A stretch of 64,000 nucleotides of DNA from Octopus sinensis (Eukaryota). The position numbers and the translations under genes are program-made. The number at the start of each line of letters is the position of its first letter. The first letter of the stretch is position 1. Positions 25,709 to 41,997 of the stretch are shown here, piece by piece. The stretch spans positions 67,208,001 through 67,272,000 of the forward strand of contig NC_043000.1 of assembly GCF_006345805.1 (NCBI RefSeq). The letters run 5' to 3'. Under the pieces are notes generated by a model. That model was not told the origin of the DNA, made no database searches, and saw only the letters and a program-made list of their open reading frames with translations.

Positions 25709-25945
25709 ATGCCTCAACACCAGATTGTTGACCTTGAAAGCCTTGTTAAAGAGCGCATAAAGAAATTTCCATTTGACAAAAAGGAACAAGATAATATGGA
25801 TAAAATTTTGCCCACAGACATAAATTGGAAAAATGTTGCTGTGTTCCATGGCGAAACAACATATAGCGATACATCTTCCTTTAAAAAGCCTAATTCTCAT
25901 ATATTATTTACAGCAAATTTTGAGAATAGAACTGATCATGTACAG
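25709..25945 (+). CDS. Coding exon 1 of the aerolysin-like gene (79 codons)
   Basis: Acceptor cccatcttttttcag ends at 25686, ATG at 25709, donor CAG|GTGAGT at 25946. 237 nt, phase 0. Confidence 0.85.
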
Positions 25946-40400: not shown

Positions 40401-41997
40401 TTTCTGAGTTCAAATTCTGCTGAGGTCAACTTTGCCTTTGATCCTTTTGGGGTCGATTAATTTAGTACCAGTTGCATACTGGGGTTGATCTAATCAACTG
40501 GCTCCCGCCCCAAAAATTTTGGGTTTTGTGCCTAGAATAGAAAAGAATATTTAGATCTGTTATATGCTAGCCCTGTCCAGACTTCAAACTTTTCCACTAC
40601 AAATCCCTAAAAATTACACTGAAATACAAAACAAATTGCTCAGTTTCTGTGCGGTAATGCCAAAATGCTTGGACAGATCTACAGCATCCTAGAACATTAT
40701 TATATCATTCTAAAAGTAAATACTAACCATCCTATTTAGTAAAACAGTCTAACATAAAATCTAACAGAATATAAACAGGCTACATAAAAAAAACAAACAA
40801 ATAAAAAAAAAGCATTGATAAGCTCATTAGCTCCAAACACAATGCTGTGGTCCATTTAACTAGTGATAAGTGAAGAAGAAAAGCAACTGTTGTGCTTTAG
40901 TTACCATACCCTATTTTTACAATGGTCACCACTTAGAATCTTTTGACATACAATAAATGAACAAATAAATCTCTACACAGTTGCTAGACTTGCAAGATGC
41001 AACAGCCAAATATCCCTCTAATTATACCTTGTTACCTTAAAAAGAGTGGGTCAAGTGGATAATATAATGCTTGAGAGAAGGGTAGGATGGTTATGGCTGA
41101 AATGCCTTTGTTTATAAGTCTGTTCCTGGGGTTAAACAACTAGCATTCAAAAATATTTTGGGTAGTAGAAAATATGTTTGGAATATTACGTGACAAACTT
41201 CATACAATAAACCACTATTTATCAAAGTGCAAGGGTATATAGTCAAAGGAGCTTGAAATATTAGGAATAATCAGTCTGAAGATCATCACATTTAGTGATT
41301 CAACCAATTAATTATGACTCAGAGCTGACTGAGGCAAAATGACAGCAATATTGAACAGTAGAATGAAATTTAATATTGTAAGGTTGATAATGAAAATACC
41401 TAAAACATAAGTAAATTAAAACCTGATATATCTCCATGATTTTTGTATATCTTCATTTCCTTTTACTAATATTTTACATGCAACTAACTTTTCTTTATGT
41501 ATTTAGTGTTCAATCAGATTTCTTATTTTCAAATTAACAAAAAGCTAAAAATACATTTATTAGATTCATTAACAAGGTTTAAAATCTGATTATCTATTAA
41601 ACATTTCTTTGCTTTCAAATTTATTCAATGACTGACCATAATGTTTCAACAACTTCTTTCTTCTCTGTATCAAAAGGTTTCAGTTCAACCTGGTTATAAA
41701 ACCTCTGCAAATCTTGTGATTCGAGAAGAAGAATACATTGGCTCATTTACCAGTGAAACTAGCTTTCAAGGCTTGATACATGTCACATTGCGAAACAAGA
41801 AGGATCAATCTGAGATGAAAACCATGACAATTCCTGTCACTCAAGTCTTCACTGCAGAGAAAGGTTTCACATGTGACGGAGTTAGTTCCATCTTTGTCAA
41901 TACAGGAGAGTGTCGATGTCGATTTGGTATTGAGCAAAAACTAACTTTGGCTGAAGAAAAATTAGAAGAAAACGTAGAAGAAAACACAGAAGATTAA
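25709..41997 (+). CDS. Three-exon gene, join(25709..25945,28007..28216,41677..41997), 255 aa; ETX/MTX2-family aerolysin-like beta-pore-forming protein (LIN-24/glabralysin-like)
   Basis: All junctions are GT-AG and phase 0, the spliced frame is open, and an in-frame TAA (25697-25699) lies upstream of the ATG. The joined protein reads [15 protein letters not shown]|[70 protein letters not shown]|[24 protein letters not shown]...[11 protein letters not shown]. This matches the ETX/MTX2 pattern: F-x-N-x-T-x3-Q, Ser/Thr-rich strands flanking an amphipathic hairpin, and SQ-x-V-x-V-x-P. Family assigned by eye. Confidence 0.85.
26379..26761 (-). mobile_element. Complete short non-autonomous Helitron in intron 1
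   Basis: The minus strand reads A|TC...hairpin CCTGagcaacgcCGGG...CTAG|T, inserted between A and T with no TSD. Confidence 0.8.
26790..27600 (+). mobile_element. Old I/Nimb-like LINE remnant in intron 1
   Basis: Degenerate translation [12 protein letters not shown]...[26 protein letters not shown] resembles the post-RT motif of I-group LINEs. Confidence 0.5.
28007..28216 (+). CDS. Coding exon 2 of the aerolysin-like gene (70 codons, predicted insertion hairpin)
   Basis: Acceptor tttttcacaattatag ends at 28006, donor CAA|GTAAGT at 28217. 210 nt, phase 0/0, in frame with ORF 28016..28252. Confidence 0.88.
31622..32096. mobile_element. MITE/foldback element with 136-bp near-perfect terminal inverted repeats
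   Basis: 31622-31757 is the reverse complement of 31961-32096 with one mismatch seen; non-coding spacer; no clear TSD. Confidence 0.8.
32180..32635. repeat. (TATG)n/(TA)n microsatellite
   Basis: Direct inspection. Confidence 0.95.
32640..33000 (+). repeat. Long CT-rich polypyrimidine tract
   Basis: About 360 bp that is nearly all C/T on the + strand. Confidence 0.9.
33158..33195 (+). ncRNA. Minimal type I hammerhead ribozyme motif (A6U variant), sense orientation in intron 2
   Basis: TCTTT-CTGTTGA-A-GAGC(GTAG)GCTC-GAAAC-GTC-AAAGA; GUC cleavage triplet. Confidence 0.65.
33290..33696. repeat. (TA)n/(TATG)n microsatellite
   Basis: Direct inspection. Confidence 0.95.
33697..34086 (+). mobile_element. 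tRNA-derived SINE, family B (full length)
   Basis: Same head, core and tail as 24136-24530. Confidence 0.85.
34616..36830 (+). mobile_element. Penelope-like element with inverted ~230-bp terminal repeats
   Basis: RT C-terminal motif [21 protein letters not shown] and GIY-YIG motif [21 protein letters not shown]. 34616-34846 is the reverse complement of about 36600-36830. Confidence 0.8.
36390..36473 (+). ncRNA. Decayed hammerhead motif with extended stem II
   Basis: CATC-CTGATGA-GTGGGG-TCATTGCC...TTCAAT(gta)ATTGAA...GGCAATGA-..CCC-AAAA...GATG; the GAAA box is mutated. Confidence 0.5.
37257..37476 (+). mobile_element. tRNA-derived SINE, family A
   Basis: ggtggcaagttggcaaaattgttagc...gagttcaaattccgc...tttgcctttcatcc. 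Confidence 0.8.
39700..40280 (+). mobile_element. Highly decayed LINE RT remnant
   Basis: [11 protein letters not shown] (YADD-like) near 40060 and a YKFL-like motif downstream. Confidence 0.4.
40335..40551 (+). mobile_element. tRNA-derived SINE, family A
   Basis: gcagtgagctggcagaaacgttagc...gagttcaaattctgctgaggtcaactttgcc. Confidence 0.8.
41677..41997 (+). CDS. Terminal coding exon 3 of the aerolysin-like gene (106 codons + TAA)
   Basis: Polypyrimidine acceptor cttctttcttctctgtatcaaaag ends at 41676. The frame [20 protein letters not shown] continues the exon-2 motif VDSQ. Stop TAA at 41995-41997. Confidence 0.85.
   Translation, partial: VSVQPGYKTSANLVIREEEYIGSFTSETSFQGLIHVTLRNKKDQSEMKTMTIPVTQVFTAEKGFTCDGVSSIFVNTGECRCRFGIEQKLTLAEEKLEENVEENTED

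Follow-up and report, generated by a model that had tools for sequence, protein, structure and literature searches.

Described relatives of the octopus gene

Two sets of described animal proteins frame the interpretation of LOC115210375, a gene contained in a 64,000-nucleotide stretch of DNA from Octopus sinensis (contig NC_043000.1, positions 67,208,001 to 67,272,000; hereafter the window): the LIN-24/LNTL-1 proteins of nematodes and the glabralysins of the snail Biomphalaria glabrata. LIN-24 of Caenorhabditis elegans is an aerolysin-like protein of 271 amino acids (aa) with its domain at residues 68-193, and its gain-of-function alleles cause a non-apoptotic, engulfment-dependent death of vulval precursor cells (PMC12945463, PMC11860826). 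The wild-type protein is reported in the same two sources to promote resistance to starvation and infection. The glabralysins comprise five ETX/MTX2 genes with 3-4 introns and variable head domains, and their published tree, which includes sequences from gastropods, bivalves, cephalopods, brachiopods, annelids and nematodes, broadly follows the phylogeny of the species (Lassalle et al. 2020, PMC7016736). In a 2026 study, differential expression on schistosome infection was found for a B. glabrata gene with the annotation "Lin-24 (twenty-four) like" (PMC13619432). The octopus gene encodes a protein of 255 aa that, as detailed below, belongs by sequence to the same family as the nematode proteins, and for which an aerolysin/ETX-MTX2 fold is predicted. 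In our interpretation, LOC115210375 probably encodes a LIN-24-like, endogenous and regulated pore-former that resides in the cytosol, rather than a venom or humoral toxin secreted by the classical route.

A conserved protostome family that includes LIN-24

Sequence comparison identifies the octopus gene as a member of a conserved protostome family, made of single-lobe proteins of ~250 aa, that includes LIN-24/LNTL-1 and is not specific to cephalopods. A profile search of a collection of 5.8 billion proteins yielded 223 matches, with E-values from 1e-60 to 1e-134 and a coverage of ~95%, and the named ones are all from protostomes: bivalves, gastropods, a chiton, annelids (Capitella, Owenia, Helobdella, Paralvinella, and Lamellibrachia), the nemertean Lineus, a priapulid, the flatworm Fasciola, and many nematodes. 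This distribution is that of the glabralysin tree. An exhaustive search with a hidden Markov model (HMM) of 1.84 billion representatives recovered 176 clusters, defined at 50% identity, with E-values up to 1e-30 and 561 with E-values up to 1e-10; the majority consist of 250-300 aa proteins matched from end to end. The named divergent matches are further mollusc paralogues and another nematode, including a tandem set in the abalone Haliotis rubra, where several divergent paralogues (LOC124289647, LOC124289669, and LOC124289674) are located close together on one 930-kb contig. Only one octopus cluster and copy was found in these searches.

The link with LIN-24 comes both from the names of the matches and from direct comparison. 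UniRef names include the filarial "LIN-24 Like family member" (E 1e-60 to 1e-64) and Ascaris "LIN-24", and the Caenorhabditis remanei cluster contains CRE-LNTL-1. In BLASTP comparisons covering residues ~3-245, the octopus protein is 34% identical to the Ascaris "LIN-24" (E 1e-37) and 35% identical to the C. remanei LNTL-1 cluster (E 8e-38). Like the nematode proteins, it has a single ETX/MTX2-type domain and lacks a signal peptide (255 aa in octopus, 268-303 aa in nematodes), and it shares with them the invariant motifs F-x-N-x-T, T-E-R-x-T, and A-N-A-G-F as well as residues W144, G226, and Q236. There are also differences. In the first arm of the putative hairpin described below, octopus and other molluscs have P-P-N-P, whereas nematodes, annelids and the nemertean have T-P-C-E; mollusc proteins, in contrast with those of nematodes, possess a C-x-C before the R-F-G-I-E-Q block and an acidic tail; and the clade V nematode proteins carry an N-terminal extension. 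In clade V and Steinernema members this extension starts with MLCGC, MFCGC, or MLRCC, a sequence that resembles an acylation (palmitoylation) motif and that, if it is one, would tether these proteins to the cytosolic face of a membrane.

The glabralysins also appear to belong to this family, to judge by their templates and their published tree. They are single-lobe mollusc proteins of the ETX/MTX2 type, predicted to have three domains and modelled on Cry23Aa1 (4RHZ) and Cry45Aa1 (2D42) (PMC7016736), which are the two best structural templates of the octopus protein (see below). They differ in being five genes, against the one octopus gene found with its two octopod-specific introns. A preliminary description of the window, made from the sequence alone, had named LIN-24 and the glabralysins as lectin-less animal relatives, and both choices hold: the first through the full-length identity of 34-35% with nematode proteins bearing LIN-24/LNTL-1 names, the second through the shared Cry23/Cry45 templates and the presence of cephalopods in the glabralysin tree. 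The database entry MCP3663285.1, labelled 'ETX/MTX2 family pore-forming toxin [Gammaproteobacteria bacterium]' and encoded on a 1,271-bp contig of a metagenome-assembled genome, shares 50% identity with nematode LNTL-1; rather than being a bacterial homologue, it probably stems from eukaryotic contamination of the bin.

Evidence for an aerolysin/ETX-MTX2 fold

Taken alone, the octopus protein has a single Pfam match, ETX_MTX2 (PF03318), with 17.2 bits (E 0.005), which falls short of the gathering score, 22; a phmmer search with this one sequence against the PDB sequences returned nothing relevant, and a search of NCBIfam gave no match. By contrast, 27 of 29 close relatives match PF03318 at E ≤ 0.01 (best 3.8e-10), one of them matching Aerolysin as well, and many relatives carry a precomputed PF03318 match. 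The comparison with PF03318 that the preliminary description had proposed is therefore positive for the relatives and falls short of the cutoff for the octopus sequence itself. When the family profile was searched against the PDB sequences, it matched the aerolysin module of Dln1 (4ZNO, E ~1e-4), Cry23Aa1 (E 1.3e-3), and Cry51, and in these alignments the F-x-N-x-T and V-x-V-x-P motifs line up with their Dln1 and Cry51 equivalents.

An AlphaFold2 model built from an alignment of 29 sequences (mean pLDDT 80.6, pTM 0.63) shows long strands and a low-confidence loop at residues 116-132. Its top Foldseek match in the PDB is Cry23Aa1 (E 1e-13, TM 0.64), followed in this order by 2D42 (Cry45-type), Cry51, parasporin-2, epsilon toxin, Sip, aerolysin, Mpp75, and Dln1, then by a lamprey immune protein (5zu4) and by the Laetiporus pore-forming lectin, with a probability of about 1.00 for each match down to the lamprey protein. 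E-values range from 1e-13 to 1e-7 for Cry23Aa1, the Cry45-type protein, Cry51, parasporin-2, epsilon toxin, and aerolysin. There are 42 PDB matches at E ≤ 1e-3, and those listed are all aerolysin-family proteins or related pore-forming lectins. The Pfam matches of the relatives, the profile-to-PDB matches, and the predicted structure with its Foldseek matches agree, and the predicted aerolysin/ETX-MTX2 fold of the octopus protein is well supported. This fold is the one that the preliminary description had proposed, and epsilon toxin, parasporin-2 and Cry23/Mpp-type proteins, which it had suggested for a structural comparison, are among the matches.

The best structural matches to the octopus model are thus Mpp-type (ETX/MTX2) proteins of Bacillus thuringiensis, namely Cry23Aa1, the Cry45-type 2D42, Cry51Aa, and parasporin-2. 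Cry23Aa1, 2D42, and two Cry51 entries match over essentially the whole length (E 1e-13 to 1e-9, TM 0.59-0.64), and the F/L-x-N-x-T and V-x-V-P-P motifs of these Mpp-type proteins align with the octopus sequence. However, identity is only 14-16%, and they are bacterial secreted or crystal toxins directed against other organisms, whereas the octopus protein is the product of an endogenous, intron-bearing animal gene. The vertebrate aerolysin-like proteins are endogenous as well, with proposed immune or endolysosomal roles. Those represented among the structures (the zebrafish Dln1/natterin-like protein, lamprey 5zu4, and the toad BmALP1 of beta-gamma-CAT, 6lhz/6lh8) have a similar pore module, to which the similarity is confined; they carry added lectin or beta-gamma-crystallin domains, in contrast with the octopus protein, which has only a small helical head.

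Protein architecture and the putative insertion hairpin

Residues 1 to ~40 of the octopus protein are predicted to form a charged helical head. Further along the sequence, F71, N73, and T75 do not vary among 28 sequences, which come from five phyla, and the second signature, S148-Q-V-S-V-Q-P154, is also present. The most conserved strands, K84-TERRTKS and F138-EEELVW, enclose a segment of ~38 residues (98-136) with hydrophobic/polar alternation on both of its arms, 98-113 (Y, I, F, L, L) and 123-136 (F, G, L, V); serine and threonine amount to 32% of residues 85-112, against 18% of the whole protein. This segment has the position and the pattern expected of an aerolysin-type insertion hairpin and is a putative one. 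Both motifs, as well as Ser/Thr-rich strands beside an amphipathic hairpin, had been pointed out in the preliminary description and are indeed found in the sequence. Towards the C-terminus, the C-x-C-R-F-G-I-E-Q block is conserved, and the acidic tail (244-255) shows little conservation.

The tip of the hairpin (residues 113-125, window positions 28106-28144) is the most conserved block in the cross-phylum alignment of 28 sequences, where its conservation is unusually high for a membrane-spanning loop. Its rank drops to seventh among 106 diverse representatives, below the flanking strands of the aerolysin core. We had held the tip to be the most conserved element of the family from the 28 sequences, and downgraded this view after its seventh rank among the 106.

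Probable function of LOC115210375 and alternative readings

As a LIN-24-like pore-former, the octopus protein would be made in the cytosol as a soluble monomer. Upon a trigger it would oligomerise, and the hairpin at residues ~98-136 would extend into a membrane beta-barrel, as suggested by the fold and by the alternating pattern of the segment. The target might be the animal's own internal membranes, or microbes after unconventional release, in line with what has been suggested for C. elegans LIN-24 in its responses to stress, starvation, and infection. A cell-internal protein is likelier than a venom because the gene belongs to an old family of worms and snails without a secretion signal. 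By Kyte-Doolittle hydropathy, the measure used here in place of a dedicated predictor, no part of the octopus protein reaches the hydrophobicity that a signal peptide or transmembrane helix would require: the highest 19-residue average is 0.61, and the first 30 residues include 6 basic and 6 acidic ones. Likewise, a hydrophobic N-terminal 10-mer occurs in one of the 106 family representatives, and the other 105 resemble the octopus protein in having neither a signal peptide nor a hydrophobic segment.

These observations bear directly on the alternative that we consider the least unlikely, in which LOC115210375 encodes a secreted cephalopod beta-pore-forming effector of humoral immunity, venom, or skin secretion, released by haemocytes or glands to kill foreign cells. 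Besides the fold itself, several properties of relatives speak for such a role. The snail glabralysins, seemingly proteins of this type, respond when the animal is exposed to parasites and have haemocytes among the tissues that express them (PMC7016736), the B. glabrata "Lin-24 (twenty-four) like" gene is among those differentially expressed in schistosome infection (PMC13619432), and LIN-24 is reported to protect worms from infection (cited in PMC12945463). In addition, some animal aerolysin-like proteins without a signal peptide are released unconventionally. Four observations nevertheless weaken this reading: the protein has no signal peptide, a single copy was found, the gene is deeply conserved, and its family extends across phyla. 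Arms-race effectors typically form expanded families, whereas one octopus cluster was found; moreover, the family extends over several protostome phyla and is not lineage-specific. LOC115210375 is under purifying selection (Nei-Gojobori dN/dS of 0.19-0.23 against Argonauta, and of 0.43-0.50 against Octopus bimaculoides, where substitutions are few), and octopus and bivalve proteins are still ~50% identical. Our literature search returned no mention of LOC115210375 or its orthologues and no ETX/MTX2 protein from cephalopod venom or salivary glands, and it links the gene to no cephalopod venom. Overall, an immune role of the octopus protein is possible by analogy with LIN-24 and the glabralysins and a venom role has no support. 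That the gene encodes a cephalopod effector of immunity, venom, or secretion, as the preliminary description had proposed, finds no support in a protein without signal peptide, found in one copy, with a dN/dS of ~0.2, and with relatives across protostome phyla.

A second alternative, very unlikely in our estimation, is that the protein keeps the aerolysin fold and no longer forms pores, its hairpin and head serving as a binding or regulatory surface in the manner of non-toxic crystal proteins or inhibitory paralogues. The second-best structural match, 2D42, was indeed deposited as a 'non-toxic crystal protein', and the family is without documented pore activity (PMC12945463). The tip, P-P-N-P-x-I-E/D-A-N-A-G-F, contains prolines and an acidic residue and is, as the top block in 28 sequences, conserved to a degree unusual for a loop that spans a membrane. 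Its lower rank in the wider set of representatives, where the flanking core strands are more conserved, reduces the weight of this last argument. Furthermore, the hydrophobic/polar alternation is kept on both arms of the hairpin, and LIN-24's cytotoxic gain-of-function alleles fit a latent membrane-damaging activity (PMC12945463).

The LIN-24-like, cytosolic pore-former that we favour has to be set against several observations. The Pfam score of the octopus protein is below the gathering score, and the link to LIN-24 rests on nematode proteins named LIN-24/LNTL-1 from species other than C. elegans. The structure, oligomerisation, and membrane insertion of LIN-24 are stated to be uncharacterised in a review (PMC12945463), and our literature search found pore formation demonstrated for no member of the family, LIN-24 included, and no solved structure of any of them. 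There are two prolines in the first arm of the hairpin, and the conserved tip has charged and polar residues; with a model confidence below 50 in this region, the hairpin may be a non-inserting regulatory loop. Unconventional secretion may be compatible with the absent signal peptide. Finally, we found no transcript-derived contig encoding the exact octopus protein.

A broader version of the LIN-24-like reading, in which the whole family would consist of ancient protostome cytosolic pore-forming executioners or regulators, a gasdermin analogue on an aerolysin fold with the hairpin and the C-x-C/acidic tail as its switch, is speculative and we hold it to be doubtful. If it were true, octopus and other molluscs would become non-nematode test systems. 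The octopus protein should be named and studied as a LIN-24/LNTL-1-like (glabralysin-type) aerolysin-fold protein instead of being listed among the candidate venom toxins of cephalopods. As a gene it is ordinary, being annotated, conserved, and uncharacterised; it belongs to an under-studied family that occurs in numerous protostome phyla and whose members nearly always lack a signal peptide, and the question raised by this family is what role such proteins play inside animal cells.

Gene structure, annotation, and origin of the introns

The 255-aa product is identical, residue for residue, to XP_029634802.1, XP_029634803.1, and XP_036357991.1 (exact-sequence look-up), labelled in RefSeq as "uncharacterized protein LOC115210375" of O. 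sinensis, and the locus with its 10-kb flanks (GCA_006345805.1, CM016862.1, 67,223,709-67,259,997) agrees with the window at all 36,289 bases compared. The octopus origin that the preliminary description had thought probable is thereby established by protein and DNA, and its guess that the gene would be annotated only as uncharacterised proved right. By contrast, the gene is not hidden, as had been stated there: it is annotated already with three RefSeq protein records, and the same model exists in Octopus vulgaris, O. bimaculoides, and Argonauta hians. The three pieces do join, as described, through GT-AG junctions into an open frame (Table 1); all three exon lengths are multiples of 3, so that both introns are in phase 0, and the joined coding sequence (CDS) of 768 nt corresponds to 255 aa plus the stop.

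Table 1. Coordinates of LOC115210375 and of other features in the window
Feature	Position	Strand	Description
Coding exon 1	25709-25945	+	237 nt; residues 1-79; ATG start; donor GTGAGT at 25946; N-terminal helical head (predicted) and first strands, including invariant F71-x-N73-x-T75
Intron 1	25946-28006	+	2061 nt; phase 0, GT..AG; orthologous intron 2061 nt in O. vulgaris, 1669 nt in O. bimaculoides, 1040 nt in A. hians
Coding exon 2	28007-28216	+	210 nt; residues 80-149; AG acceptor after T-rich tract; donor GTAAGT; conserved KTERRTKS strand, putative amphipathic insertion hairpin (~98-136), FEEELVW strand
Intron 2	28217-41676	+	13,460 nt; phase 0, GTAAGT..AG; TA/TG microsatellites at ~32.2-34.4 kb; orthologous intron 13,472 nt in O. 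vulgaris, 11,690 nt in O. bimaculoides, 2825 nt in A. hians
Coding exon 3	41677-41997	+	321 nt; residues 150-255 and TAA stop; AG acceptor; V-x-V-x-P segment, C-terminal beta-sandwich strands, C-x-C-R-F-G-I-E-Q block, acidic tail 244-255
Probable 3' splice acceptor, TTTTTCAG then C	25679-25687	+	22 nt 5' of the start codon
Probable 3' untranslated region	41998-42545	+	Predicted from sequence; runs to the first AATAAA/ATTAAA-type signal at 42539
Reverse-transcriptase open reading frame fragment	20762-21601	-	Decayed retroelement; Pfam RVT_1, E 1.8e-12
Assembly gap	19648-19747		100 N
TA/TG/TATG microsatellite arrays	943-1333, 14545-14936, 19794-20429, 32182-34424, 50223-50662, 54755-55438, 56285-56579		

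Comparison with related sequences establishes that the three pieces are a real, intact octopus gene and that the model is correct. We consider it certain because of the exact RefSeq match, the junctions reproduced in three other octopods, the colinear single-exon orthologues, and homologue E-values between 1e-42 and 1e-165. In O. vulgaris, the orthologue (CAI9721542.1) shows 4 differences over the 768 CDS bases and one in the protein (T55 in the window, A55 in O. vulgaris); the 251-aa orthologue of O. bimaculoides (LOC106872336) belongs to the same cluster at 90%, and that of A. hians is 70% identical. When the exon boundaries of the window are applied to the loci of these three species, each annotated protein is reproduced exactly, and both GT-AG introns sit at codon positions shared by the four octopods. 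An annotation artefact, a pseudogene, or a bacterial contaminant, with chance open reading frames (ORFs) joined by chance GT-AG pairs, might be suspected from the many open frames of the window, the ubiquity of GT and AG dinucleotides, and the bacterial-looking single-exon CDS of many relatives, but is refuted by the exact RefSeq match, by homologues with E-values down to 1e-165, by spliceosomal introns within a 165-Mb octopus chromosome, and by junctions and an intact frame common to four species at a dN/dS of ~0.2.

At the 5' end, a TAA is found in frame 12 nt before the ATG, and the N-terminus of the octopus protein aligns with the starts of its orthologues. The motif ATCT..TTTTTCAG, followed by C, is invariant between the Octopus species and Argonauta, and the sequence on its 5' side cannot be aligned in Argonauta. 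This suggests that an untranslated 5' exon lies further upstream of this acceptor, and such an exon would fit the three RefSeq protein records for LOC115210375. Beyond the stop codon, sequence conservation extends across the Octopus species and, in part, to Argonauta.

Outside the octopods, the conserved CDS lies on a single exon in the chiton Liolophura, the oyster Crassostrea virginica (which has only an 11-residue alternative 5' exon upstream), the limpet Patella, and the annelid Owenia, and these orthologues are colinear across both octopus junctions, without any indel. Of the six introns in the LNTL-1 gene of C. remanei, not one is at an octopus position. The comparison of these gene structures indicates that the two phase-0 introns are real and were gained in the octopod lineage, because they are common to the four octopods, absent from chiton, oyster, limpet, and annelid, and unrelated in position to those of the nematode. 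An ancestral origin of the octopus introns is ruled out by the same four spiralian orthologues, which lack them, and by the different places of the six nematode introns. The locus is therefore a clean example of lineage-specific intron gain. Intron 2, which measures 2.8 kb in Argonauta and 13.5 kb in O. sinensis, has grown. A recent horizontal transfer of the gene was considered and rejected on account of its introns, its chromosomal context, and its conservation across species. An ancient bacterial origin of the family as a whole is possible and would fit the single-exon CDS of many spiralians.

Surroundings of the gene in the window

The window is 66% A+T, and 232 stretches in it run for 70 or more codons without a stop; 73 of these are of low complexity. 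For a given frame, the chance of remaining open is 2e-3 over 79 codons, 4e-3 over 70, and 2.5e-4 over 106, the lengths encoded by the three exons. ORF length alone is no evidence in such a sequence, and the case for the gene therefore rests on homology and conservation. LOC115210375 had been described as the only intact gene of the window. In agreement with this, the annotation shows no further gene in the 10 kb to each side of it, and the other long ORFs are repeats or derive from a reverse transcriptase; for genes made of short exons the claim is unprovable. An Rfam search of the window gave no match. A Pfam scan of 18 other open frames of the window gave a single match, to the reverse-transcriptase fragment of Table 1, and the open frames adjoining this fragment had no Pfam match. 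Apart from it, the remaining long ORFs are translations of TA/TG microsatellites, and the long microsatellite arrays account for most of the long 'ORFs' of the window.

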